A DNA stretch of 64,000 bases, from the sequence record PP813861.1. One strand, 5' to 3'. The translations under genes and the position numbers were made by a program. Below, piece by piece: positions 8,904 to 55,420 of this stretch. Each line of letters begins with the position of its first letter. Positions within the stretch are counted from its first letter, which is position 1. The notes beneath the pieces were generated by a model, which did not search any database, was not told where the DNA came from, and saw only the letters and a program-made list of their open reading frames with translations.

Positions 8904-10090
8904 GTTGTTAGTTCCTTACAAATAAACTTGATAACGTGATCACTTACAAATTTCAATGGACCAGAACAATTAGATTTCTCAATAGCGGTTTCAGTGTATG
9001 AAATTATTTGATTTCCACTTAAGGATAATGAATCAAATAATTCATAAGAGTTATTATTTTTATTCTTAAAGGATACTGCATATTGACTATTTTCACTATT
9101 GATGCAAAATAGGTTAATAGCTGGGATAGATACAGAGTTATCTGAAGTATGGCTATTTTCCGTAATATTCCAATTACTGTATACAGTGAAAATATTTGCA
9201 GCTAGTAAAAGGTTGGCATTAACCGTTTCTAAACTAACATACTCCACAGAAGTACCTTTATGCCAATATAGTTCAATTGGATTAACCCAAGTATACCCAA
9301 TGGTTTTATAGAAGGCATGCATTACATATTCTCGCCAACGTGTGGGTTTCTTATTATCAGTTAAAACACACGTAATATTGCCTGACGGATAAATGTGGTG
9401 GATGCTACATGCATTAATTTCATCTCTAACATTAGTTGTTTCAGTAATATTAGAATGATCCTGTTTGAATAGCCATTTTAAATGACTATTAGTTGTGTCA
9501 TCACCTTCCCCATTTGCAATGTCATTTTCTAACCACTTTTCAAATGTAGCTTGTCTATCAGGTGTTGGCATTCCCCAATAGGTAGCTAAAATGAAACGAT
9601 AATAGTATCGAATAATATCATCATCGTTAAGAATATTTTTATCCAGTTTCCAGTGATGTTGATACTCGTATACTTCGCTTGGAATATTATTTACTTGATA
9701 CCATGTATTAATTAATACTTGAATTGTTAATTGCCGAATACTCTCACTTGTTAGAGTGTAATATTCCCTGCTATGCGGCTCTTCAATTGTCACTTCTTGA
9801 TCAGTATAACCAATGTATTTAGGTTTACCATCGATGAGTGCAAAATTAACATTCCATGATGTATCATTACTAAAAGTGATATTAATAAAACCTTGTTCAA
9901 AGCTAGGCTTCACTACGAAACTGACATCATCCTTCTGATATGTCATTTGCGTTAGAATACCAAAATTAATTTTAGATGTAAATTCTTTATCGAAGTTATG
10001 TTTATAAAGTAATCCTAGTAAACAATCAATTTTATTAATAGTGTGGTTTTCTAATAATAAATCAGTATTTGTAAGTTCATTAATTTTCAT
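8894..10090 (-). CDS. Hypothetical early protein (gp31 position)
   Basis: 398-aa ORF, GAGG RBS, downstream of TATATTAC. Confidence 0.8.
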   Translation of the reverse strand: MKINELTNTDLLLENHTINKIDCLLGLLYKHNFDKEFTSKINFGILTQMTYQKDDVSFVVKPSFEQGFINITFSNDTSWNVNFALIDGKPKYIGYTDQEVTIEEPHSREYYTLTSESIRQLTIQVLINTWYQVNNIPSEVYEYQHHWKLDKNILNDDDIIRYYYRFILATYWGMPTPDRQATFEKWLENDIANGEGDDTTNSHLKWLFKQDHSNITETTNVRDEINACSIHHIYPSGNITCVLTDNKKPTRWREYVMHAFYKTIGYTWVNPIELYWHKGTSVEYVSLETVNANLLLAANIFTVYSNWNITENSHTSDNSVSIPAINLFCINSENSQYAVSFKNKNNNSYELFDSLSLSGNQIISYTETAIEKSNCSGPLKFVSDHVIKFICKELTTCR

Positions 10091-40823: not shown

Positions 40824-40908
40824 GCCCGAATGGTGAAATTGGTAAACACAGAAGACTTAAAATCTTCCGGCTACGGTCTTGTCGGTTCGAATCCGACTTC
40901 GGGCACCA
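40824..40908 (+). tRNA. tRNA-Leu(UAA)
   Basis: GCCCGAA/TTCGGGC acceptor, GAAGA-CT-TAA-AA-TCTTC, long variable arm, TTCGAA T-loop, encoded CCA. Confidence 0.95.
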
Positions 40909-40917
40909 ATTTAAATA

Positions 40918-40993
40918 CGGAGTGTAGCGCAGTTGGTAGCGCGCCTGCTTTGGGAGCAGGATGTCGGGAGTTCGAGTCTCCCCACTCCGACCA
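40918..40993 (+). tRNA. tRNA-Pro(UGG)
   Basis: CGGAGTG/CACTCCG acceptor, anticodon TGG at 40951-40953, CCA. Confidence 0.95.
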
Positions 40994-41014
40994 TTTTAAT
41001 AATAGGTAAATAGG

Positions 41015-41308
41015 ATGGATAATAAATGGATATCATGGGAACATCAAATTATAGGAACAGATCTTTACGCTATTCTTAGTGACCCTGAATTAACTAATAT
41101 TCAATTAGCTCAAGGCTTACACTATCTAACAGAAGCAAAGTCTTCTGTATTACATGTTTGTAATAACCATATTACATTCACTGTAACCTATCCACATGGC
41201 ACATTTAGAACCAATGTAATTAGAGAGTGCCCTGCTAGTGATACAAATACATTCAAATGGTCAGGTGTATTAGTCCGTCAAAAAGATGGAACATTCTTAC
41301 CAGAATAA
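41015..41308 (+). CDS. Small hypothetical protein between tRNAs
   Basis: 97-aa ORF. Confidence 0.7.
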   Translation: MDNKWISWEHQIIGTDLYAILSDPELTNIQLAQGLHYLTEAKSSVLHVCNNHITFTVTYPHGTFRTNVIRECPASDTNTFKWSGVLVRQKDGTFLPE

Positions 41309-41315
41309 ATAAAAA

Positions 41316-41392
41316 GGGCCTATAGCTCAGTTGGTTAGAGCAGGCGACTCATAATCGCTTGGTCGCAGGTTCAAGTCCTGCTGGGCCCACCA
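41316..41392 (+). tRNA. tRNA with CAU anticodon, most likely tRNA-Ile2 (lysidine, reads AUA) rather than Met
   Basis: Anticodon arm GGCGACTCATAATCGC as in bacterial ileX; C4:G69 and C5:G68 TilS determinants; no initiator features; CCA. Confidence 0.85.
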
Positions 41393-41399
41393 TATACTA

Positions 41400-41419
41400 G
41401 CCTCCCACTTGGGGGAGGT
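41400..41419 (+). terminator. Terminator after tRNA
   Basis: GCCTCCC-ACTTGG-GGGAGGT-TTTAT. Confidence 0.7.
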
Positions 41420-41444
41420 TTTATACTGTCTCATTGAGGAAAAC

Positions 41445-41666
41445 ATGAATACAGTAATAATGTTGGTATTATCTATCAAAGTTGGATTATTTGGTTTCAT
41501 TTCGACTAATGAAAGTAATATCCTATTTGAAAATAGGGAACAGTGTATTTCTCATCTGGATATTCTGGAACATAAATACAAGTCTCTTGAAGTTATTCGA
41601 AATGAGAATACTCTAAAGATAACCGAAAGAGATAACCATTCTATTTATATTTTTAAATGTCTCTAG
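41445..41666 (+). CDS. Small protein with N-terminal hydrophobic segment
   Basis: Start moved to ATG 41445 after GAGG RBS; MNTVIMLVLSIKVGLFGFI. Confidence 0.7.
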   Translation: MNTVIMLVLSIKVGLFGFISTNESNILFENREQCISHLDILEHKYKSLEVIRNENTLKITERDNHSIYIFKCL

Positions 41667-41962
41667 GAAAATACATGGAACATCAAGAACAAAAAGAACT
41701 ATTGAGACAACCATTACAAACACTTTATAATCTTACTTTTAGTCCCCGTTTACGTAATGGAGCGAAGGCTCCCGATTGGATTCACCTGACCGATGAAGTA
41801 ACCCTATTCCCAAACGGATTAGATATTACAATCAACGCTGTTACACGTTGCATCAAATGGGAACTTATCGGCGAGGATGTAAGTAACATTACTTATGTTG
41901 AAGCTATGTTCTTTAATAAAGGTCTTAAAGCAGTTAAAGCCTATCTCAAACATACGGAGTAA
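41657..41962 (+). CDS. Small hypothetical protein
   Basis: 101-aa ORF; start may be 41675. Confidence 0.7.
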   Translation: MSLGKYMEHQEQKELLRQPLQTLYNLTFSPRLRNGAKAPDWIHLTDEVTLFPNGLDITINAVTRCIKWELIGEDVSNITYVEAMFFNKGLKAVKAYLKHTE

Positions 41963-41964
41963 AT

Positions 41965-42312
41965 ATGGATCATCTAACCCCAACGCAGAGCGCTGTATAT
42001 TTCACATTTATTAGCCCTGAGTTTATAAAGCTAACTCTTGTTGAATCTTTTGTAGCGATCCACAAGAAACATCCAGAAGTAAAGCATTGCGTTAAGAAAA
42101 AGATTAGTGCTAATGAAACGCAGTTTATCTTTATCTTCAAAGATGGGACTGATAATTTAATCATTACACGTAAAACTGAACCTTGCCCTGAACTGGATAG
42201 CCCAGTAGGCGATAGTATTAAGTTGTCCGGCGAAGAACTTAAAAATATTCTTGCTAAGTACGATCGTCCCAAGGATGGTAACTATTTCAAGCACTGGACT
42301 GATCGCCCGTAA
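41965..42312 (+). CDS. Hypothetical protein
   Basis: 115 aa, GGAG RBS. Confidence 0.75.
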   Translation: MDHLTPTQSAVYFTFISPEFIKLTLVESFVAIHKKHPEVKHCVKKKISANETQFIFIFKDGTDNLIITRKTEPCPELDSPVGDSIKLSGEELKNILAKYDRPKDGNYFKHWTDRP

Positions 42313-42327
42313 TAAAATATTACTGGT

Positions 42328-42346
42328 TATGTAATACTATGTAGGA
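42328..42346 (+). promoter_or_regulatory. tRNA promoter-like motif TATGTAAT-nn-TATGTAGGA
   Basis: Directly upstream of tRNA-Asp; same architecture at 40097-40115. Confidence 0.6.
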
Positions 42347-42364
42347 AGTCATGTCCATACGTTT

Positions 42365-42441
42365 GCGCTCATAGTTCAGTTGGTTAGAATACCCGCCTGT
42401 CACGCGGATGGTCAGGGGTTCGAGTCCCCTTGGGCGCGCCA
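42365..42441 (+). tRNA. tRNA-Asp(GUC)
   Basis: GCGCTCA/TGGGCGC acceptor, CT-GTC-AC loop, G73, CCA. Confidence 0.93.
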
Positions 42442-42447
42442 TTTAAT

Positions 42448-42523
<76 letters not shown>

Positions 42524-42529
42524 ATTTCT

Positions 42530-42553
42530 AAAGAGTAGCTTCGGCTACTCTTT
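42530..42553 (+). terminator. Terminator after tRNA-Asn
   Basis: AAAGAGTAGC-TTCG-GCTACTCTTT. Confidence 0.85.
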
Positions 42554-42607
42554 TATGTTGCCATGGGTTATCTTATGAATTAAAATGATTTACTTGAGAG
42601 CACACTC

Positions 42608-43615
42608 ATGTTTGAATTACTATTATCGCCAGATATAGGCGAAGAGTTACCCTTGGTTGGATTTAATGAAATTATTAAATTAGGCGATCTACCTGTGGCA
42701 CTAGCTGGTACTATGTCATATGTGGATGGGAATATACTGTATGTTGGATCTGGACATCATACTGAAGGACAAACAGCCGCAACTGTGTTCAGACGTTTTA
42801 CCATATCACCATTCGCAGATGCAGGTGCAACTGCTACTGGAACATTCTTACCAGGCGTATCCTTAGGATTTGGAACATTACATAAGAATAATTTCATTGT
42901 TTATGGCGGTATTACTGGATGGAACTCGGCTGGTAATGGTGGTACGGGAACATCTAACTTTATACAACATTTTGATATAGCTACAGGCAATAGGGTTGAG
43001 CGATATAGTGGTCCCGTACCACTTTGGGGTACAGCCTCCGCATCAGATGGTAATGATCTTATTCTATGCGTTAACCCAATTGGCGTAAACGCAATGCGAT
43101 TAAAACCATCAAGTAAGTCTTGGCTTAGCGGGCAAGACTATTCAGGTGGTGCTCGTTCAGGTCAACAGTTATTCTTTTATAATGGTTACTTTTACCATTT
43201 TGGTGGTTGGGATAATACAAAGAACATACCTAATCTTGAAGTTTATCGATATAATGCAACTACCTTAATATGGGAGCAAACACCTTGGATGGTTATACCT
43301 GCTGATAAAGGAACAATCTGGCAAGGTAATGGTTATGTAGATGGGGACTATTTTAATTACCTTAACGCTGTTGATGTCGGCGGTGTAACTAAAATGTTTG
43401 CACAACGTTTTAATATTAGGCGCCGGAAATGGGCTGAACCATTTGAACTAGGTATCGGATTCCTTAATATTTCATCTATAGCTAAAGGTCCGGATAATAG
43501 CATGATCATTGTAGGTGGATCTAAAATGCCAGTTGGTGGTAGAGCATATATGTTGAAAAGCCAATTATTAACTGGTATATATCAAGTTAAAGTAGCCCCA
43601 TTAGTTCTCGATTAA
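42608..43615 (+). CDS. Kelch-like beta-propeller protein, probably virion-associated
   Basis: Repeats LYVGSG, FIVYGG, FYHFGG, IIVGG with Y/W spacing. Confidence 0.75.
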   Translation: MFELLLSPDIGEELPLVGFNEIIKLGDLPVALAGTMSYVDGNILYVGSGHHTEGQTAATVFRRFTISPFADAGATATGTFLPGVSLGFGTLHKNNFIVYGGITGWNSAGNGGTGTSNFIQHFDIATGNRVERYSGPVPLWGTASASDGNDLILCVNPIGVNAMRLKPSSKSWLSGQDYSGGARSGQQLFFYNGYFYHFGGWDNTKNIPNLEVYRYNATTLIWEQTPWMVIPADKGTIWQGNGYVDGDYFNYLNAVDVGGVTKMFAQRFNIRRRKWAEPFELGIGFLNISSIAKGPDNSMIIVGGSKMPVGGRAYMLKSQLLTGIYQVKVAPLVLD

Positions 43616-43649
43616 ACTAAAGATAAAAATACTAGTGCGATGATATTAT

Positions 43650-43760
43650 GTAGGATTACTGTATCTAGATAATCCTAAAGCTATCCACTAAATACACTCG
43701 GTGGTAGATTTAATTATAGAGTGTGTCTGAGTGCCAGGGGTTTGCCACCCCTGGCTATAT
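43650..43760 (+). ncRNA. Candidate small RNA: 5' hairpin + H-type pseudoknot + terminator
   Basis: TATGTAGGA motif; stems 43651-58/43670-77, 43681-89/43700-07, 43693-99/43719-25; terminator 43733-55. Confidence 0.5.
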
Positions 43761-43905
43761 TATGTCAATGAGTGTATCTCGTTCTTTATAACCACTATTG
43801 ATATTTAATATAGGTGAAGGGAAGGTGACGAGGCCTTTCCATAGCCGGTATATAACCTAATTTAATAAAGGTTATATACCACATTGTAATAAAGGAACTT
43901 CTATA

Positions 43906-44430
43906 ATGAATAACACAAATCAGTTTGTAAAAACTATTGTTGATTACCAGGCTATCCTGGATGCATTGATATATAAAACTAATGAGAATTGGAATAAGTA
44001 TGGGATGCATTATCATCTTAATGATGTCAGTCATATCACTATACGTGATCATAGAACAGTAGGGTTTTTTATTGGTCGTCAATCTGGTAGTACTACAGCA
44101 TTAATGGAATTTTCAAAACGCTACCCTGGTGAATGTTTGGCAGTATTCACCGACGAAAGAATTCGACGTGGTGCTCAAGATAAACTATCCAAAACACCAG
44201 ATAACATTATTCCATATTTAACTACATTTAAACTACGTAGCTATATCCATAAATCTGGACTATCAACGATCCAGAAAGACTTTAATGAAAATTTACTTTC
44301 AGATATCCGCTATATACTTGTAGATAATGCATCTTATAATCTAAATTTACGAGGTATTACTGATAAAGAATTTAATCAGTGGGTAGCTGATACTTTTGGC
44401 ACTAGTGTGATTGTAGTTCGTTTTAGTTAA
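43906..44430 (+). CDS. Degenerate P-loop protein resembling a terminase ATPase domain
   Basis: GRQSGSTT (Walker A with K to S) and YILVDN (Walker B-like). Confidence 0.55.
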   Translation: MNNTNQFVKTIVDYQAILDALIYKTNENWNKYGMHYHLNDVSHITIRDHRTVGFFIGRQSGSTTALMEFSKRYPGECLAVFTDERIRRGAQDKLSKTPDNIIPYLTTFKLRSYIHKSGLSTIQKDFNENLLSDIRYILVDNASYNLNLRGITDKEFNQWVADTFGTSVIVVRFS

Positions 44431-44450
44431 AATATAAATAGGTAAAATAA

Positions 44451-44473
44451 AAGCCCTCCGTCATGGAGGGCTT
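44451..44473 (+). terminator. Intrinsic terminator
   Basis: AAGCCCTCC-GTCAT-GGAGGGCTT. Confidence 0.8.
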
Positions 44474-44597
44474 TATGTTGTTATGATATGACATTGTTGT
44501 CTAAATAAAATATAGTACGCATATGCGAAGTCATTTTTAATGGCTTTGCATATGTCATTAACTATAAATTATAGTAATTTTTAGAAGAGGTATTTAA

Positions 44598-44756
44598 ATG
44601 TTTGAGGCGTTATTATTTACACCACTTGTTAATTTAAAACCTGTTGTGGATGCTATAGACATATACGAAGGTAGTTTACCACCTTCAGCAAGTTTCCAGG
44701 TTATCGATTTAGATAATACCGTGACTGAACCAGAGGTTATACCGGATGATAATTGA
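44598..44756 (+). CDS. 52-aa acidic protein (MFEALLFTPLVNL...)
   Basis: Manually found; GAGG RBS; overlaps start of next gene. Confidence 0.65.
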   Translation: MFEALLFTPLVNLKPVVDAIDIYEGSLPPSASFQVIDLDNTVTEPEVIPDDN

Positions 44757-45714
44757 ACTTAAATGGCTTGATCCTAATAAAACAAAATATCACTCCACTG
44801 AAATTTATCGAGCCGATTACGAATTCGATAATATTAAAGATGCTGAATTAATTACTACAGTTGGACCAGGGATAACATCTTATCAAGATACAACCGTGGA
44901 ACATAAAAAAACATATTATTATCGCTTTAGATTGATCTATGGATCACAAAAATTTGAAGCATCGGATATGTTCACATTTACAGCTATCCCATACACTGGA
45001 CCTGGTCCAGCTATTTTCCAATTTGGAGATGAACGTTTTGGTTATTTTGGAAAGTTCCCAATGGACTTACCGTCATTACCATCGTTTAATATGGTTCGTG
45101 AAGCATTTAGTTTAGGGCCAATTACAGGTAACTATCTAGAAGTAGCAGAACTTCATAAATTCGCAATAGGTGGTACTGTTAGAGGTACCTTCCCATATCC
45201 ATTGGCAATTGGGTCGGAACTACCAAGAGATAGTGAAATCATGCAAACATTAATTAATGGTGGTGCAATTCCATTAACAATAGGTTTACATGATTGGAAA
45301 ATAATAATACCCTCAGCCGAACATCATAATAATCCAAACCATAATGTGCAGCATTTCCCAGGTGAACTGCGGTCAATGATGGCAGTTATTACAGAGATGT
45401 ATGCTCGTGTTGAAGATGCTGAGACAGGTAACAAAACAGGTGGTAGACTTACATTAAACAGTGGTTTAAATATGTTCTATGACCCATTGAGTGCCAGATT
45501 TCCAGATACCGAAATAAAATATATAATTAGTTCAGATTGGACTGATAATGAATGTACAGCTATTAATTGGACAAGTAGAGATGCAGTATATCCATTAAGA
45601 GCAAAAGAACTACATACCGAAGTAGTTAATGTAGCCACAGATGACGTATGGAATAAAATGCTTATTTGGCCAATTCTAGTTTATACAGGTCTAACTAAAC
45701 CGAAGGAGGTGTAG
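44746..45714 (+). CDS. Fn3-like domain virion-protein paralog 1
   Basis: IYR...SYQDTT...YYYR followed by YTGPGP...GDERFGYFG, typical of phiKZ-like structural paralog family. Confidence 0.7.
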   Translation: MIIELKWLDPNKTKYHSTEIYRADYEFDNIKDAELITTVGPGITSYQDTTVEHKKTYYYRFRLIYGSQKFEASDMFTFTAIPYTGPGPAIFQFGDERFGYFGKFPMDLPSLPSFNMVREAFSLGPITGNYLEVAELHKFAIGGTVRGTFPYPLAIGSELPRDSEIMQTLINGGAIPLTIGLHDWKIIIPSAEHHNNPNHNVQHFPGELRSMMAVITEMYARVEDAETGNKTGGRLTLNSGLNMFYDPLSARFPDTEIKYIISSDWTDNECTAINWTSRDAVYPLRAKELHTEVVNVATDDVWNKMLIWPILVYTGLTKPKEV

Positions 45715-45716
45715 CC

Positions 45717-47663
45717 ATGAGAATTGAATTAACTGACTATAATTCAGATCCATCCACTACTATAAAGATATATCGACATTATTTCCCATTTGATGCAGAA
45801 GATTTGCCGCCCGTGTTAGTTGAATTACCTGGTAATACAAGTAGCTACACCGATGAGACTCTTATACTCAACACCATGGTTTATTACAGGATATCAGTCG
45901 TGCATAATGGCAATGAAGTAGTTGGTCCTTTATACACAACAATGAAACGTTATTATACTGGACCACAAATTGATAAGAATGTCCCAGATAGAATCTTACG
46001 TGGTGATAGTTATATTGGCCGATATGGTACATTACCTTTGAACGTCATATTGTCAATAGATGAAGCTAAAAAATTAGTACCATCATGTACTGTACTTGAA
46101 GGAATCGATCATGAAACAATAGAGGTCGAGAAGTGTAGTTATCATGGGAACGTGTTATTTATTTCTAATATACCTGTTTTCTATGGTAGTCCTGAAGATC
46201 TTTATAATGATGGTGCTCTACTATCATACGGAGACGGATTAGGTGTATTCAGCCGCACATTTTACGATTCTTTAACAACTAAAGTTGAGCAAGGGAAACC
46301 TGTAACGTATAACAATTATTCATTTAAGTTCAGACTGATGACAACAAGCGAGTATGCTGAACTATATGTTAAGTTATATCCAGATTCCCCTATGGGTCTT
46401 ACATGTGATCGAGTTATAGGTAATTGTAACACGCATTCATATAAATCACCAGTCGTAGATATCGGATCACAGGGTAATAAATTCAGAACAGTTGGATTAG
46501 ATGGAGTGTCTTCAGACACAGAGTGGACTACTAAGGGACCACTTTATATGGTGGTCGAGTTAATGAATAGAGGTGATATGGCATGGCCAAGCCCTGATGT
46601 AAATATCATTCCTGCTGATCCAACTGATCGCATGATGTTCTGTCAATCTGAAATTATTAACGGACGTGCCCATTTCTTTGGTGGTGTTTATAGCCATTTT
46701 AATTCATATGCATCTGCCACTACTAAACATATCAGTATTAATTTGGATGGATCTGATAGGCAAGTACATGCGGATATGCCAGTTGGGGTATATAACGCAT
46801 GTACTTGGGTTAACGGGAATAAAATCTACTGTATGGGCGGCGCCAAAAAGATAGGCAGTAGCGAATATACGTATGCTGAATTATACAATGACATTCAGGT
46901 ATGGGAGGATGATGGTACGCCAGAAGGTTCTTGGTCAACTATAACGAATAGTTTACAATTTTATTATGGTGCTAGTGTTACGAAGTATTATGATAAAATC
47001 ACTGATCGTCAAAGACTTTTATATATTGGCGGGTATGGTAATGTAATTCCTTCCGGACAGTATAATTTTGCAACAGCGGATCTGGATACATTTGACGGTA
47101 CATTTACAGTCTATAATCGGTCTAATTTCTACGACGGTGGCGGCGGTCCAATAGCACCACATGAAGATTATTTCTTATGGGTTGCTCCAGAAAGAAGTAC
47201 TAATGGTTTTACAAATGCGACATATAAATTAACTATACCTGAAGACACTGACTCGTATACATATAGAACCAAGATAACTCAACAAGGTACAGAATTACCA
47301 ACCACCAAAGGTGGTAAAATTCATATTTGGCGAGATACTATCTTCATGTATGGCTCGGCATCTCTTGATGAGAAACAAGGTGAGTTATACTTATATCAAT
47401 TTGTACCTAATGAAAACCGCTGGTTGAAAATAACCGTAGCGGTACCAGGATTAAGTAATAGCAGTAGAGCATCTTTAAATGGAGCGTTTTACGAAGATAA
47501 GCTCGTGCTTATGCATAATCAACCTTGGCTTAATGAATCGTTTACATCAAGTTTCTATGTTATTCGATTAATCGATCCAATCGATGCACCAATCATCCCA
47601 GTCACAGATGTACAAGTTGGCACAAGTCGGATATTTACAACTTATGCTGAGGTTTCGATATGA
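45717..47663 (+). CDS. Fn3-like + Kelch propeller virion-protein paralog 2
   Basis: N-terminal IYR...SYTDET...VYYR, YTGP...GDSYIGRYG; C-terminal HFFGG, YCMGG, LYIGG, FMYG repeats. Confidence 0.75.
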   Translation: MRIELTDYNSDPSTTIKIYRHYFPFDAEDLPPVLVELPGNTSSYTDETLILNTMVYYRISVVHNGNEVVGPLYTTMKRYYTGPQIDKNVPDRILRGDSYIGRYGTLPLNVILSIDEAKKLVPSCTVLEGIDHETIEVEKCSYHGNVLFISNIPVFYGSPEDLYNDGALLSYGDGLGVFSRTFYDSLTTKVEQGKPVTYNNYSFKFRLMTTSEYAELYVKLYPDSPMGLTCDRVIGNCNTHSYKSPVVDIGSQGNKFRTVGLDGVSSDTEWTTKGPLYMVVELMNRGDMAWPSPDVNIIPADPTDRMMFCQSEIINGRAHFFGGVYSHFNSYASATTKHISINLDGSDRQVHADMPVGVYNACTWVNGNKIYCMGGAKKIGSSEYTYAELYNDIQVWEDDGTPEGSWSTITNSLQFYYGASVTKYYDKITDRQRLLYIGGYGNVIPSGQYNFATADLDTFDGTFTVYNRSNFYDGGGGPIAPHEDYFLWVAPERSTNGFTNATYKLTIPEDTDSYTYRTKITQQGTELPTTKGGKIHIWRDTIFMYGSASLDEKQGELYLYQFVPNENRWLKITVAVPGLSNSSRASLNGAFYEDKLVLMHNQPWLNESFTSSFYVIRLIDPIDAPIIPVTDVQVGTSRIFTTYAEVSI

Positions 47664-48514
47664 TTACCTTTAAAATTAGGAATCCTAATTCTAGATCAAT
47701 TACAAGTATTGAAGTATACCGCGAGTTATCAGGTACACCTATTCCGGATACTCCTATAAACCAACCAATCCAGAAACTAGACGGATTCACGACAGCTATT
47801 ATTGATCGTGATGTGGTAATTGGTAATGTTTACGATTATCGCATTAGGACTGTAAGAGAAGGCGGCGACACAGCCATTAGTCCAGTATTTACATTTAAAG
47901 CTGTTTCGCAATATGGACCAGGTGGTTTCTTAGAACCTATGATGCAAGCAGATGGAGCTGCATTGTTAGATAGGGTAACTAGTCCGGAGCTTCCTAGTCT
48001 TCAAGATCTATTAATGATGTTTAATGGGCAATCGGAAAATGCCATAAATTGGACTGATCAATGGACAAAAATTAAACATAAATCAGATATTTACTTTCTC
48101 CCATATATGGGTTATATCGAGATACCGATAGACAAATTATCTGAGCTAATTAATAATGTAGATAATAATAGAACTATAGTTAAAGGTAATTGTAAATATT
48201 CTTTTTATGTCCCATCATTGCCAACTTCGTTCTATATGCAAGTTATGGATGGTCGGTTTGTTGGACCATATACACTACCAGCTGATTACCCTAGAAAATC
48301 AATGATCCGGTCAATTAGTGATCAGGTTAATAAAAATGCAGATGATGTCAGGGTAATTATGACTGTAGTAGGTGCGAATTCAACTAGAGCATTTAAGGAT
48401 CTGAGTAAGTATGGGTCATCAACCATTACCACTTTTAACCCAACTATTGATGCTAATGTTAGTTGGTATTGGAAACCCATATTAAATTTTATCCAAGAAT
48501 CAGGAGTAAATTAA
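47660..48514 (+). CDS. Fn3-like domain virion-protein paralog 3
   Basis: VYR...IIDRD...VYDYR, QYGPGG; ATGA overlap. Confidence 0.7.
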   Translation: MITFKIRNPNSRSITSIEVYRELSGTPIPDTPINQPIQKLDGFTTAIIDRDVVIGNVYDYRIRTVREGGDTAISPVFTFKAVSQYGPGGFLEPMMQADGAALLDRVTSPELPSLQDLLMMFNGQSENAINWTDQWTKIKHKSDIYFLPYMGYIEIPIDKLSELINNVDNNRTIVKGNCKYSFYVPSLPTSFYMQVMDGRFVGPYTLPADYPRKSMIRSISDQVNKNADDVRVIMTVVGANSTRAFKDLSKYGSSTITTFNPTIDANVSWYWKPILNFIQESGVN

Positions 48515-49374
48515 TGTACATCACTCTTAAAAATGTTAGAGGTTGGCCTGGTTCTACACCGATCGTTACATTTTGGTCGTATACCAATGCGATACCTTGG
48601 GATTACAATAACCTACCACCCCACTATTACTATGATTGGGATTTAATAGCAGGATTCTGGCCATCCAGATACCCTGAAGATACATGCGTTTGGTTGAACT
48701 TAAAATATAAGGATATATTTGGTCAATTAGCTTATACAGGACCAATGCGTACTCTTAGTGTAAGTAGTAAATGGCAAAGTGTATTGGGATATACAAAGCT
48801 TGAAGCCGGTGATGGACAATATGCCAGGTTGACAAAGTCATACAAAGGTGAAAATAGACCAACCCTTAGACCAATTGGTTCTTCGCCATATAGCATCCCA
48901 GGAATGAATCTTGATGAGGCTCCAACCCCTTATTTTATTGATAATGAGTATGTAGCTTTTCATGATACATCTAGTATTGAGAAAGCTGTCGCTGTGGCTG
49001 TTTACCATGCGGGGTACATGGGACGGTCTGGAGATATGTCCGATGTATGGCCGAGTGAATTGATAGAACATATAGGTGGTCCAACTCAACAAGGACGTAT
49101 AATAGATATGCAGGACGTTAAGTGGGAGGTATATGTTCCAACATTAAACGAATTCAAGCGTTATATGGGTACAGCTTTTCAGACAGGCATCCAAACAGAC
49201 CAGTCCCCGGTAACTAATTTATCACTGCCAGATAATGTAAAGTTCCTCACATCAACACCATCTCCAAGAAATAATACCATGTTAGTTGCTATCGATAACG
49301 ATGGTATTGAATATGATGTTGACATAGCTAATGAAGTTGATGTGATTTTTGTATTTAGACCTATACTAAAATAA
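48514..49374 (+). CDS. Divergent paralog 4 of the same family
   Basis: TAATG overlap fixes start at 48514; YTGP...AGDGQY motif; C-terminal FVFRPIL like paralogs 1 and 3. Confidence 0.65.
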   Translation: MYITLKNVRGWPGSTPIVTFWSYTNAIPWDYNNLPPHYYYDWDLIAGFWPSRYPEDTCVWLNLKYKDIFGQLAYTGPMRTLSVSSKWQSVLGYTKLEAGDGQYARLTKSYKGENRPTLRPIGSSPYSIPGMNLDEAPTPYFIDNEYVAFHDTSSIEKAVAVAVYHAGYMGRSGDMSDVWPSELIEHIGGPTQQGRIIDMQDVKWEVYVPTLNEFKRYMGTAFQTGIQTDQSPVTNLSLPDNVKFLTSTPSPRNNTMLVAIDNDGIEYDVDIANEVDVIFVFRPILK

Positions 49375-49388
49375 CTTTATACGGCATA

Positions 49389-49412
49389 AGACCCCTCTAT
49401 ATAGAGGGGTCT
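49389..49412. terminator. Perfect 24-bp palindromic terminator
   Basis: AGACCCCTCTAT/ATAGAGGGGTCT. Confidence 0.75.
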
Positions 49413-49523
49413 ATTTATAAGTAAAAATATACATAAAGTCATTATTATTTGTAGGTTAACCCTACATATAACTCAACTAGAAACCGGGCGTTAATAAAAT
49501 TTAACACTACGGAAAACATAAAG

Positions 49524-50066
49524 GTGACTCAAATGGCTTTTCATTTTAATACACTAGATCTAGACGACTTTATTAATAATTCAAATAAAGTATTAAAAAT
49601 AAATGTTGGCAAGCAAACATTAGTAGCTTATGATGTTGATAAACTAAATATTGTTAATTCAGCTATTAATAAACTAGTTTATAGCGACCCTATAAGTGAA
49701 GAACATATCGAAGCATCACTGACAGATGATTCATTAAAAGAGCTTAATAATTATCTACTTAATAATGGCATTCAGAATAGCGCCAAGATGATGATTGATG
49801 CTGCTCTAGAAATCAAAGAATATTATAAAAATTACGATTCTTTTAGGCCATGTATTTATAAATTAAAATCAATGCATACCAAAAATACAGATGATGTGTA
49901 TCTAATATTTATTCTCGGTGAATCGGACAAGTTATTTGATACTATGCAAGGTTATATTGTTAATAAGTCAGGTAATCTAATCAGAACTACTGTTCAGTCA
50001 TGGCGATTCGAGAAAATTGAATTCAATGACTTAGTTGAATATGATAAGCGTTGGTTATTTATTTAA
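49524..50066 (+). CDS. Hypothetical protein
   Basis: 180-aa ORF; start may be ATG 49533. Confidence 0.75.
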   Translation: MTQMAFHFNTLDLDDFINNSNKVLKINVGKQTLVAYDVDKLNIVNSAINKLVYSDPISEEHIEASLTDDSLKELNNYLLNNGIQNSAKMMIDAALEIKEYYKNYDSFRPCIYKLKSMHTKNTDDVYLIFILGESDKLFDTMQGYIVNKSGNLIRTTVQSWRFEKIEFNDLVEYDKRWLFI

Positions 50067-50117
50067 TATTAAATAAATAAAATAATACTTCCATATACAC
50101 TATATGTAGAAGATTTC

Positions 50118-50194
50118 GCCGCTATAGCTCAGCTAGGTAGAGCAACGCACTTGTAATGCGTAGGTCCTCCGTTCGATTCGGAGTGGCGGCACCA
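50118..50194 (+). tRNA. tRNA-Thr(UGU)
   Basis: GCCGCTA/TGGCGGC acceptor, CT-TGT-AA loop, CCA; TATGTAGAA upstream. Confidence 0.95.
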
Positions 50195-52334: not shown

Positions 52335-52865
52335 TTAGACGGTGTATAAACCCTCAGTATTACATGTTGTTATGATATTGTAAAGACGATGCCAATAGCG
52401 ATCATACGTATTTTTACGTTTGTAGCTATTGGTGCGGATGACTAGATTGGCGACCCAGTGATTCTGATCAATGGTCTCATGTAGATGCCCGAAATAAGCC
52501 CCCAGTTCAATTTCGAATGGGATCTTACACTCACGCCCCTTACACATTGCTTCACGCAATAAACGCATTGCAGAATTCTCTGCATTGGTATCTTTAAATA
52601 AAAGACTAATGTATCCAGGGCTACCACCAGTTTCTTCATCAACATGGCCTGAACAGCAATAAATAGTTGCAACATTGATAAATTGATTAAACCATTTAAT
52701 TAATGGCCTACATGCTTCATCAATAAGATCTTCATATTCAGGTTTATACATTACTTTAACAGTATCATCTGCACGTTGTTTCACATGATGAAAATATTGC
52801 TCCCAATTTACATTAGTGTAATATAGCATATCCATATTAGAATTACTCATACAAATCAACCCCAT
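52335..52865 (-). CDS. TYW3/Taw3-like protein (possible RNA methyltransferase fold)
   Basis: IDEACRPLIKWFNQFINVATIYCCSGH resembles TYW3 motif D-x2-I-x2-L-x3-N-x6-T-x2-SCSG-R/H. Confidence 0.4.
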   Translation of the reverse strand: MGLICMSNSNMDMLYYTNVNWEQYFHHVKQRADDTVKVMYKPEYEDLIDEACRPLIKWFNQFINVATIYCCSGHVDEETGGSPGYISLLFKDTNAENSAMRLLREAMCKGRECKIPFEIELGAYFGHLHETIDQNHWVANLVIRTNSYKRKNTYDRYWHRLYNIITTCNTEGLYTV

Positions 52866-53587
52866 ATGTTATTGGCATATTCGCGGTCATTGAAAATGCG
52901 GGTAAGATCCATCCGCTTTTGAATGCGCGCTAGTATCCATTTTAGTTGTTTAGTTGATAGTTCTTGATTTTGCTTGTACTCACCTGTAGCATGGATGTAA
53001 TAATCAAATTTACGACTTACAGTAGTAGTATGTGCACATGCAATAGCAAATGCTTCAAGTGCAGTTAGTTTGGTTGATCCATTATCATTACAATTAGGGA
53101 TAAACTCAAGTACACTATTAACTGCATCTACACCACTACCCAAATGAGCCCAATCTTTCTTGGTGATGTTGATACCCATGTCTTTAAGAATAACTGTATA
53201 TATGTCACCATTCTCCATAGTGAACATCATAGAAGTATTACCATTAAACAACCTGCGTTCTATGACTGGCAAGATATTTACTTCAACTTTAAACCAATCA
53301 GCTAAATCAACACCTGCGGTAAGGGCATTCAATAGATCATAAACATTATCTATAGTTCCAGCAAAAGCCATAGTTTTAACACGTTTACCTTGCCAAGTAA
53401 CTGTCGGATGAAAAATTATCTTGTGGCAATCATTGTAATATACATCTACACCTTCAGCTTTAGCAGTTAGATCAATATAACCGTTATCTAATACTGGAAG
53501 TCGCCCAATGCTATCAGTTGCATTATTCCGCTCAATTAATAGGCAGTCTGCAATCATGACTTTACCATCATTTACGATATATGTCAT
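52856..53587 (-). CDS. HslV/proteasome-beta-like Ntn-hydrolase
   Basis: After AAGGAG RBS starts M-TYIV...MIAD (N-terminal Thr nucleophile); K in DCHK, FAGT, HLGSG motifs. Confidence 0.6.
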   Translation of the reverse strand: MTYIVNDGKVMIADCLLIERNNATDSIGRLPVLDNGYIDLTAKAEGVDVYYNDCHKIIFHPTVTWQGKRVKTMAFAGTIDNVYDLLNALTAGVDLADWFKVEVNILPVIERRLFNGNTSMMFTMENGDIYTVILKDMGINITKKDWAHLGSGVDAVNSVLEFIPNCNDNGSTKLTALEAFAIACAHTTTVSRKFDYYIHATGEYKQNQELSTKQLKWILARIQKRMDLTRIFNDREYANNIWG

Positions 53588-53621
53588 TTTCACTCCTTAT
53601 AATAAAATAAATAGGCTTAAG

Positions 53622-53745
53622 CGAAATAAAGCCCTCCCCGAAGGGAGGGCATTATCAATAGGTGGGATCTCGGCGGCACCTTCATTTGCGGACGGGAACG
53701 CTGAAGGGAGATAGTCCGGGAGATCCCGATTTGGGTATTCTTTAC
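53622..53745 (-). ncRNA. Candidate GC-rich structured small RNA with nested pseudoknot
   Basis: TATGTAAAG start motif; stems GGGATCTC/GAGATCCC, CGGAC/GTCCG, CCTTCA/TGAAGG; terminator 53631-53650. Confidence 0.5.
53631..53650 (-). terminator. Intrinsic terminator
   Basis: GCCCTCCC-CGAA-GGGAGGGC. Confidence 0.8.
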
Positions 53746-53753
53746 ATATGGTA

Positions 53754-54134
53754 TTACTGCAAGTATTTGTTCCCCGCAGTATAATCACCATTGATCCAAT
53801 TTTTGATTACAACACTGATCCCTTCATTTTCTTTAACGGTAACCCCCAACTCAAGATCGATTGATTGATAAGCTACAGCCGCCAGTGTTAACCGAAGATA
53901 AACGGATCCATCTTTTTCGATATCGTAGGATACTACGAACCCGTCTTGTAGATTTTGTAGCTGGAATGTATTAGCATGTTGTGGGTGGAGACGATCCATA
54001 TTGTACTCGACGACATCTAGTAGATATTGCCGAGCATCAGCAGCATTATCAAATCCGAGATCGCACAGACCGATCGGATAGCGAGCTTGCGTGCATGTAA
54101 CTTTCATAGATACTACACGATGTTGTTTGCACAT
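53754..54134 (-). CDS. Hypothetical protein
   Basis: 126 aa, GAGG RBS. Confidence 0.8.
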   Translation of the reverse strand: MCKQHRVVSMKVTCTQARYPIGLCDLGFDNAADARQYLLDVVEYNMDRLHPQHANTFQLQNLQDGFVVSYDIEKDGSVYLRLTLAAVAYQSIDLELGVTVKENEGISVVIKNWINGDYTAGNKYLQ

Positions 54135-54154
54135 TATATTTTCCTCTTAGATGT

Positions 54155-54246
54155 CAAAAACCCTCCCCGATCAGGGGAGGGTATCTCATTGGTACTTCTT
54201 CAGCAAAACTGAAACTAAGATAAAAGAGCAATCGTAAAGGAACTAC
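54155..54246 (-). ncRNA. Candidate ~90-nt U-rich small RNA
   Basis: TATGTAG motif, internal hairpin, terminator 54160-54182 with U-tract on minus strand; no ORF. Confidence 0.35.
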
Positions 54247-54275
54247 ATAGAATAGTGTATTTCTTTTACTATTTT

Positions 54276-54689
54276 TTACACAACCTCTTTAGATGGGGGT
54301 TCTTTATGAATCCAGTCTAAAGTTGTTGGTAAACTATTATCTGATCTGAAGGTACACACCGTCCGGAACCGAGAGTGATCAACTACAGATAATTGCCCGT
54401 TAATCGCAGCCTCATATTGCCTACACAACTTCACACACCTTTTCTCTAGATCAGTTGGTTCGTAACCTTCTTCTCTTGGTTCAGTGTATGGTCCATCCCA
54501 AAAGAATATTAATCTAAGATCAATCCCAGATTTATACTCCGCTTGGTATGAATATTGATGAACATCAAAATCATCTAATTCTTCAACTAGATGTGATGTT
54601 ATTGTTCTAGGGTGTTCATGAGTTAATTCACTGTATATATGTTTATTTCTAGGGTTTTGTAAATCAACTACGATAAGTTGACTAGTCAT
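54276..54689 (-). CDS. Hypothetical protein (MTSQLIVVDLQ...)
   Basis: Start moved to ATG 54689, adjacent to upstream stop. Confidence 0.75.
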   Translation of the reverse strand: MTSQLIVVDLQNPRNKHIYSELTHEHPRTITSHLVEELDDFDVHQYSYQAEYKSGIDLRLIFFWDGPYTEPREEGYEPTDLEKRCVKLCRQYEAAINGQLSVVDHSRFRTVCTFRSDNSLPTTLDWIHKEPPSKEVV

Positions 54690-54690
54690 T

Positions 54691-55344
54691 TTAACTTTTA
54701 TCCAGATGTCTATTACGAGTGCGTTCCACTGCTGTAGGTTCGACAGTGGCTCGCGGTAGATAAGTAATCTCCGGGAAAGTCTTATTAAGAGCATCTTCAA
54801 TTAGCTCTTTAGCAATCTCTGCATCGATGTAATGGTTTAGAATAATACCACGATGATACAGGAAGAAGCTGTATTCATCATAACCATGGCGAAGACTTAC
54901 TTTACCACGATACCCACCATAGGTTAGAGTATCTTCGTTAATTTCATTCCGATAAATATCAAGTTGGATATTATTTTGAAGATGCATTTGAATGAAGTCA
55001 TTACCATCGCCACCAAATAGGGTTGGTCGTTTCCGCCCGGTAACAACATCTTGGATGGAATCCATTAGTCGGTTAATGTCTGTTTCTAATCGTTGGATAT
55101 CACATTGAGAATTCATTGCTTCATGAAAACGAGTTACAACTGCATTAAATTCTTCTTCAGTCCAACCGCTGGTACGTTTTTCATAATCAACAATGATAAT
55201 ACCGAACCAGGCATAACCGTTAGAATGTTTTACTTTAACACATAGATGAGGTACATTATCAGCACCTGACTGATGGTTAACAGTGTAATTATTATTACGG
55301 CTGATTACTAGTTTGATAAAAGGTAGACTAATGATTGACGCCAT
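54691..55344 (-). CDS. Hypothetical protein
   Basis: 217 aa, AAGGAA RBS. Confidence 0.8.
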   Translation of the reverse strand: MASIISLPFIKLVISRNNNYTVNHQSGADNVPHLCVKVKHSNGYAWFGIIIVDYEKRTSGWTEEEFNAVVTRFHEAMNSQCDIQRLETDINRLMDSIQDVVTGRKRPTLFGGDGNDFIQMHLQNNIQLDIYRNEINEDTLTYGGYRGKVSLRHGYDEYSFFLYHRGIILNHYIDAEIAKELIEDALNKTFPEITYLPRATVEPTAVERTRNRHLDKS

Positions 55345-55379
55345 GGAAATATTCCTTTTGTATTTTTTAAATTAAAGTA

Positions 55380-55420
55380 GGAGTTATTATTGAGTTTCAA
55401 CTCAATACATCAATAACTCC
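55380..55420. other. Long bulged intergenic hairpin
   Basis: GGAGTTATT-ATTGAG-TTTCAA-CTCAAT-ACATC-AATAACTCC. Confidence 0.55.

Follow-up and report, generated by a model that had tools for sequence, protein, structure and literature searches.

The stretch of DNA analysed here (the window, 64,000 nucleotides of sequence record PP813861.1) belongs to Pseudomonas phage phiKZ. A GC-rich island lies between the genes PHIKZ288 and PHIKZ289, on their coding strand (window minus). The 1.4-kb stretch around this island is 100% identical to phage PA7, and a 241-bp stretch over it shows 100% identity to both PA7 and phiKZ (NC_004629 263116-263356). Coordinates in phiKZ are obtained by subtracting the window coordinate from 316916, with the window minus strand corresponding to the phiKZ plus strand. 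An earlier note, made from the letters of the sequence, had drawn attention to the high GC content of the island, which is borne out by values of 0.48-0.50 compared to ~0.35 in the surroundings (100-nt windows). It had also placed the island upstream of an HslV-like gene, a description that suits PHIKZ289, a proteasome/HslV-like candidate. The locus falls within orf184-304, a largely non-essential accessory arm of the phiKZ genome (PMC12676376), and its features are as follows.

53754..54134, minus strand: PHIKZ288, the upstream gene (126 aa), whose stop codon lies 5 nt ahead of the TATG box
53745..53748, minus strand: TATG promoter box, phiKZ promoter P130 (sequence and published TSS)
53728..53744, minus strand: unpaired 5' leader of 17 nt (sequence and fold)
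53664..53727, minus strand: structured core of 64 nt, a single extended hairpin (MFE fold, RNAalifold consensus and pair counts)
53657..53663, minus strand: single-stranded tail ACCUAUU straight after helix P1 (alignments)
53656-53651, minus strand: AU-rich linker (sequence)
53650-53631, minus strand: terminator hairpin GCCCUCCC-UUCG-GGGAGGGC (sequence and terminator scan)
53630-53624, minus strand: U-tract UUUAUUU, with the mapped 3' end T119 at 53624
52856..53587, minus strand: PHIKZ289, the downstream gene (243 aa counted from ATG), encoding a proteasome/HslV-like N-terminal-nucleophile hydrolase candidate
53597..53791, minus strand: 64-aa ORF annotated in some phiKZ-like records, overlapping the end of PHIKZ288, the RNA and the terminator

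In homologous loci, a TATG or TATA box occupies the equivalent place, and the leader in other genera is shorter (~11 nt, consensus ACGAAY). The terminator, a perfect 8-bp hairpin with a UUCG loop, had already been noticed in the earlier reading and was recovered independently by the terminator scan, with the U-tract directly after it.

The transcript of this locus has been mapped by ONT-cappable-seq (Putzeys et al. 2024, microLife 5:uqae002). In that study, the start site of P130, a 'middle promoter', was located at phiKZ 263172 (window 53744, the base after TATG) and the 3' end T119 at phiKZ 263292 (window 53624), defining TU198, a 120-nt transcription unit without a gene (supplementary tables S5 and S7). 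Table S7 lists TU198 among 17 phiKZ '5'UTR-derived ncRNA candidates' and assigns it to PHIKZ289. These published ends nearly match the coordinates at which the earlier note had proposed a discrete non-coding RNA ending at the UUCG terminator, and the RNA described here is identical to TU198 in locus, strand, both ends and its 120-nt sequence. The transcript itself is therefore already catalogued; in Putzeys et al. (2024), however, it is a bare candidate entry with no northern blot, no structure and no comparison beyond the genus. What is new here is a covarying fold, invariant unpaired motifs, a wider family spread and long forms, for none of which a description was found in the literature searched or in Rfam. 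The phiKZ Grad-seq, dRNA-seq and transposon papers do not mention the RNA, and phage reads were absent from one public raw RIP-seq run.

According to the same mapping (Putzeys et al. 2024), phiKZ terminators are frequent and leaky, transcripts from the promoters P128 and P129 terminate at T119, and P130 reads extend to phiKZ 264292, the longest one covering PHIKZ289; the authors place the size limit of their ONT pipeline at ~80 nt. Since no other start site precedes PHIKZ289, this gene depends on read-through of T119. Across phiKZ 261514-264292 (window about 52624-55402), P128 and P129 transcripts end at T119 while P130 reads go beyond it, and this difference in read ends could reflect promoter-specific read-through or mere length bias of the method.

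A folding energy of -49.3 kcal/mol was obtained for the 160-nt intergenic strand, a value that beats 200 of 200 shuffles (z = -3.1). In phiKZ, the minimum-free-energy fold is a nested series of four helices, P1-P4, composed of the following elements.

53727-53720 with 53671-53664, minus strand: P1, GGGAUCUC/GAGAUCCC, the closing stem
53718-53716 with 53676-53674, minus strand: P2, CGG/CCG
53715-53708, minus strand: bulge ACUAUCUC (8 nt), with AUCUC invariant
53707-53702 with 53684-53679, minus strand: P3, CCUUCA/UGAAGG
53701-53699 with 53690-53688, minus strand: P4, GCG/CGC
53698-53691, minus strand: apical loop UUCCCGUC, with CCCGUC invariant
53680-53676, minus strand: GGUGC strand, invariant

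A consensus of nine sequences obtained with RNAalifold likewise consists of one extended hairpin plus the terminator. In the MAFFT-based alignment of nine sequences, 98.8% of cells are paired and compensatory changes occur in 11 of 18 pairs; none of 500 shuffles matched the observed pairing percentage or covariation score, and only 34-46% of cells were paired when the partners were slid by 1-3 columns. Twelve sequences aligned to R1, a covariance model built on the P1-P4 fold, gave 95.1% paired cells and compensatory changes in 17 of 21 pairs (36-45% paired in slid controls). This second alignment was fitted to R1 and therefore leans towards the model, whereas the MAFFT-based nine-sequence count is free of that bias. 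The changes affect several helices: P2 is CGG/CCG in phiKZ and UAG/CUA or UGG/CCA in other members, P3 alternates among CCUUCA/UGAAGG, CCAGCU/AGCUGG and CCAAC/GUUGG, and P4 among GCG/CGC, CAAG/CUUG and UACC/GGUA. G-U pairs appear only when the window minus strand is read, their complement giving A-C mismatches, so that the element is an RNA of that strand.

This fold retains much of what the earlier note had drawn and rearranges the remainder. Its closing stem is present at the positions of P1 and covaries, and its proposed pairing of CCUUCA with a downstream UGAAGG is equally present and covaries as P3. The CGGAC/GUCCG hairpin that it placed inside the closing stem does exist as sequence in phiKZ, but across nine homologues it is only 66.7% paired, has zero compensatory pairs and performs no better than shuffles. 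The nested pseudoknot built on this inner hairpin is thus abandoned, with its helix giving way to P2 and P4 and the supposed pseudoknot helix being P3 of an ordinary nested fold. The note had made the RNA conditional on conservation of its structure, and P1-P4 proved to be both conserved and covarying across genera.

Beyond the helices, the family shares a set of fixed elements. In most members, P1 (7 bp) continues straight into P2 (5 bp) to form a helix of ~12 bp, and a G-C pair opens P1 in 12 of 12 sequences. The bulge between P2 and P3 has the family form (A)ACAUCUC and is faced only by UG. Equally invariant are the apical loop YNCCCGUC, the GGUGC strand and the two C-G pairs with which P3 begins. 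AUCUC and CCCGUC remain unpaired and unchanged across 12-16 sequences, and both are among the C/U-rich motifs to which the earlier note had pointed. The tail follows the consensus R-C-Y-U, with ACCUAUU in most members; it reads R-C-C-U in most and A-C-U-U in KEN49 and PhiPA3, A76 being missing.

Relatives were sought upstream of PHIKZ289 homologues (synteny), by pattern scans and with R1. Clear relatives were found upstream of PHIKZ289 homologues in RVTF4, D6 and Psa21, and four more distinct contigs, from uncultured jumbo phages, came out of a motif scan of IMG/VR. The carriers now comprise Phikzvirus, Pawinskivirus, PhiPA3, Psa21, D6, RVTF4, Phabio, Viktualia and uncultured jumbo-phage contigs, which together represent at least five named genera as well as phages that are unclassified. 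R1 scores are 89-104 bits in Psa21, D6 and RVTF4, 72.9 bits in phiKZ, 53.5 bits in the Pawinskivirus phages HPP-Temi and PA1C, 36.5 bits in PhiPA3, 28.3 bits in Viktualia and 27.7 bits in Phabio, with 29.4 and 27.0 bits in the uncultured contigs L066 and L064, respectively. The RNA is single-copy, R1 finding exactly one per genome in members. A weak second match in the window (9116-9177, minus strand; 17.3 bits, E 0.02) has a GC content of 0.34, lacks the central helices and is probably due to chance.

No R1 match was obtained in 201phi2-1, Noxifer, kmuB, EL, OBP or Salmonella phage SPN3US. A motif scan of 185,579 bacterial and archaeal genomes returned ten matches, all of which failed R1 and represent chance; in metagenomes, 11 of 13 matches failed R1 and were likewise chance, the genuine ones being jumbo-phage contigs. 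With Rfam 15, only tRNAs reached the gathering score in the whole window, and the island region gave only terminator-driven chance matches of 14-20 bits even at E up to 10. The Rfam scan that the earlier note had suggested as a check therefore assigns the RNA to no Rfam family. It is highly probable that the locus encodes a real, conserved, structured non-coding RNA.

The genes after the RNA follow a conserved order, in which a small hydrophobic protein (62-84 aa) precedes the PHIKZ289 homologue and a PHIKZ290.1-like protein of 41-49 aa. The hydrophobic gene lies between the terminator and the PHIKZ289 homologue (L006:1271-1504, L007:1286-1504 and L008:1334-1504, all plus strand), and its product shows two membrane-helix-like stretches by eye. 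It is present in all members except Phikzvirus, PhiPA3/Pawinskivirus, Phabio and Viktualia, phiKZ itself being without it. The flanking proteins are merely 24-39% identical across genera. In the contig L015, the PHIKZ289 homologue is missing and the RNA is kept, and in Phabio and Viktualia different genes directly follow the RNA.

As for PHIKZ289 itself, a weak match with E 5e-5 links it to the PHROG 'peptidase HslV family', and the named Atlas clusters closest to it, which are language-model look-alikes, carry Pfam Proteasome (score 0.93); no sequence match was found in Pfam or PDB. The Thr or Ser directly after the start Met is kept in homologues (MTYIV; MSIVV in PhiPA3), and the N-terminal M-T-Y-I-V is HslV-like. 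Judged from its sequence, PHIKZ289 is plausibly a proteasome/HslV-type N-terminal-nucleophile hydrolase candidate.

A comparison of phiKZ with T2P indicates how the parts of the locus evolve. Identity of the RNA, counted from its start site through the tail, is 96.6%, compared with 83.7% for the PHIKZ288 gene (71% at third codon positions), 78.7% for the PHIKZ289 gene (62% at third codon positions; 79% identity of the protein) and 60.6% for linker plus terminator, figures to be read in the light of mosaic genomes in which the next upstream intergenic region is 100% identical. The RNA differs at three sites, all unpaired, and the substitutions in the terminator stem are compensatory. The upstream intergenic region in question (window 54135-54275, minus strand) is flanked by genes of 84-93% identity and contains another published candidate, the 89-nt PHIKZ288 leader (phiKZ 262671-262760, window 54245-54156); it represents a patch of recombination or, alternatively, another conserved leader RNA.

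Sequence conservation halts directly after the tail, and what follows differs among lineages. In KEN49, an otherwise near-identical phiKZ-type phage, 281 non-coding bases separate the tail from the terminator, while PhiPA3 and Pawinskivirus carry a GC-rich extension of 260-270 nt in the same place, where the small membrane-protein gene otherwise sits. The extensions of these long forms are located as follows.

L004:1595-1875, minus strand: long-form extension, KEN49
L025:1582-1840, plus strand: long-form extension, PhiPA3
L061:1262-1505, minus strand: long-form extension, HPP-Temi
L062:690-945, plus strand: long-form extension, PA1C

The KEN49 insert and the PhiPA3 extension are significantly similar, aligning with a local score of 32, compared to 17 ± 2.2 for 300 shuffles (global z ~7). 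In both PhiPA3 and KEN49, the complete long form, from core through extension to terminator, outperforms its shuffles in folding. The KEN49 insert has no BLAST relative among 50,697 phage records, and an Rfam scan of the KEN49 insert and the PhiPA3 extension returned nothing relevant. An origin as degraded genes was considered and rejected: on the RNA strand, each of the three frames of the KEN49 insert is interrupted by stops, and both the KEN49 insert and the PhiPA3 extension are unlike the neighbouring proteins. The coexistence of long and short forms implies that the core is a module trailed by either a terminator or a second RNA domain, and the long-form extension may be such a domain.

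With regard to function, the RNA is tentatively read as a stand-alone, trans-acting riboregulator, the likeliest of the readings considered. This reading is favoured because the boundaries of the core are sharp and conserved, the RNA survives changes of the downstream genes, and the layout is sRNA-like. Bacterial base-pairing sRNAs usually begin with a structured 5' domain, continue as an AU-rich single strand and end in a terminator hairpin followed by a U tail. The present RNA has its own promoter, a Rho-independent terminator and a conserved single-stranded seed (AUCUC, CCCGUC). Phage RNA polymerase starts at 53744 after TATG and stops at 53624, yielding the 120-nt RNA, and the functional product would be this terminated RNA, possibly trimmed to a core of ~68 nt. 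The hairpin is a scaffold on which the bulge with AUCUC, the apical loop with CCCGUC, the GGUGC strand and the R-C-Y-U tail are displayed, and its C/U-rich unpaired motifs would bind a partner that is conserved either in these phages or in the Pseudomonas they infect. The putative partner may be a protein or a G-rich site on another RNA, for instance where ribosomes bind, and read-through of T119 would merely supply the downstream proteasome-like operon.

In having its own promoter, a structured body with C/U-rich unpaired motifs, an AU-rich linker and a terminator with a U tail, the RNA resembles C-rich-loop sRNAs such as those of the RsaE/RoxS type as well as the 141-nt phiKZ sRNA upstream of PHIKZ302. 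It has no sequence or Rfam kinship with these RNAs, and in place of CCCC runs its invariant motifs are AUCUC and CCCGUC. When five phage genomes were searched for an 11-mer that would pair with the bulge, it occurred no more often than its reversed control. The idea that the RNA mimics or complements 16S rRNA was also considered, as all members share several 7-9-mers with 16S in both orientations (E. coli rrsH as proxy), and was dropped because such shared 7-9-mers are at noise level. Several observations weigh against a stand-alone role: the 11-mer search pointed to no phage target, the RNA does not feature in the phiKZ Grad-seq study, the invariant pairs beside the bulge resemble a pocket for a protein or ligand more than they do a simple seed, and the arrangement of box, RNA and operon in most members fits a cis role equally well.

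To our knowledge, lytic phages have so far yielded hardly any structured non-coding RNAs, and none with an assigned function in nucleus-forming jumbo phages. The RNA described here has sharp boundaries, strong covariation and invariant loops. Its home, the phiKZ accessory arm, is where counter-defence functions cluster, and the RNA offers a concrete candidate, simple to mutate, through which a phage that serves both as a model and in therapy might regulate by RNA or manipulate its host. The alignment of the family can be converted into an Rfam-style model as it stands.

The cis role just mentioned would involve termination control without an RNA switch and is the main alternative, possible if rather unlikely. 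The polymerase, or a phage or host protein bound to the nascent hairpin, would set the passage through T119 into the PHIKZ289 operon, and the 120-nt RNA would be a by-product of termination, with lambda nut, HK022 put and protein-dependent attenuators as models. Attenuators, riboswitches and put/nut RNAs all share with the present locus a promoter-proximal structured leader followed by an intrinsic terminator before an operon, and in most members the succession of promoter, structured leader, terminator and promoterless operon agrees with this scheme (the start site being mapped only in phiKZ). P130 reads that get to 264292, past PHIKZ289, are in line with such control, the invariant pairs round the bulge suit recognition by a protein, and processive antitermination acts at a distance, so that inserts of 270 nt would be tolerable. 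Several points speak against it. The discrete terminated species is prominent enough to have its own transcription unit, and the RNA persists where the following genes differ. P128 and P129 transcripts carry the core too and hence should respond, and the difference in read ends is perhaps length bias. The promoter-proximal position matches HK022 put, but put RNAs fold into two adjacent stem-loops, whereas the conserved fold here is a single hairpin. In addition, we know of no antiterminator factor for the phiKZ non-virion polymerase.

A further proposal, regarded as unlikely, concerns the maturation of the RNA: by analogy, the core could be a tRNA-acceptor-like minihelix cut from a precursor, giving a mature RNA of ~68 nt. 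The leader would be cut off by RNase P, and the terminator or the 270-nt extension would be lost through 3' processing; the product would have escaped long-read mapping because it is below the ~80-nt pipeline limit. The invariant G-C first pair, the ~12-bp stack of P1 and P2, the R-C-C tail and the AU-rich trailer are consistent with this proposal. All six phiKZ tRNA genes (window 40824-50194, plus strand) encode the full RCCA and then AU-rich trailers. Bacterial RNase P pairs with the RCC motif, and its non-tRNA substrates include pre-4.5S RNA and phage C4 RNA (PMC4919922); RNase E cleaves just after CCA (PMC2190699). The RNA shares with the C4 RNA of P1/P7 and the CI RNA of P4 a hairpin-type structure derived from a phage operon leader, and it resembles the RNase P substrates C4, CI and pre-4.5S in a closing stem opened by G-C and, in most members, an R-C-C after the stem. 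Unlike C4, it does not match the Rfam C4 model and its tail is RCYU rather than RCCA, and unlike both C4 and CI RNAs, its loops are not complementary to the downstream ribosome-binding site. A tRNA proper was rejected, as the six tRNAs that ARAGORN reports in the window all lie outside the island, the Rfam tRNA model does not match, and the fold is a single hairpin rather than a cloverleaf. If the proposal is true, the RNA would be a jumbo-phage riboregulator of modular build, processed from precursors that come in a short and a long form.

It is improbable that the element is passive, acting as a 3' end or insulator for PHIKZ288 transcripts or as a stabilising leader with no specific partner. 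The termination of P128 and P129 transcripts at T119 would fit such a role, as would the frequency and leakiness of phiKZ terminators (Putzeys et al. 2024), but the element would need no promoter of its own, and the invariance of loop and bulge across genera whose flanking proteins share 24-39% identity would be unexpected.

The earlier note had also suggested a riboswitch or attenuator controlling the downstream protease gene, an idea weakened by the lack of any competing pairing, by a freely evolving linker and terminator, and by inserts of ~270 nt in three lineages. As a metabolite riboswitch, the core would be the aptamer and the UUCG hairpin the expression platform, which would account for the 5'UTR position, the conserved pocket-like internal loop and, in the short forms only, the terminator directly downstream. 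Core and terminator, however, fold separately in 10 of 10 members folded, with no conserved antiterminator; P1 cannot pair through its 3' strand with the 5' arm of the terminator, since both are pyrimidine-rich. Divergence is unconstrained in linker and terminator (60.6% identity to T2P), and in three lineages 260-280 nt lie between core and terminator. No Rfam family was matched even at E up to 10, the downstream genes hint at no metabolite, and the RNA differs from attenuators and riboswitches in having neither an alternative antiterminator pairing nor a known ligand or factor. Given the independent folding, the free linker and the long forms that part the core from its terminator, a classical riboswitch is very unlikely.

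That the conservation is due to an encoded 64-aa protein (53597-53791), whose translation the earlier note had named as grounds for refutation, is scarcely credible: the reading frame is uninterrupted in phiKZ and carries an annotation in several records, among them ANB1, but it runs out of frame over PHIKZ288 and crosses the mapped terminator, has no Pfam or PHROG match, finds an equivalent only in the near-identical T2P, where it ends differently, and has no conserved counterpart across the RNA in RVTF4, D6, Psa21, PhiPA3, Phabio or the uncultured contigs, while the substitutions over it take the form of paired-base covariation and are not codon-like.

A minor observation concerns the sequence after the terminator in the group of RVTF4, D6 and Psa21, where the terminator is always followed by UUUAUGCCG (L006:1240-1255, L007:1262-1275, L008:1312-1322 and the uncultured contigs). 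The associated 9-mer shows no enrichment in the phiKZ window. In read-through transcripts of this group, (A)GACG of the 5' leader can pair with CGUCU after UUUAUGCCG.
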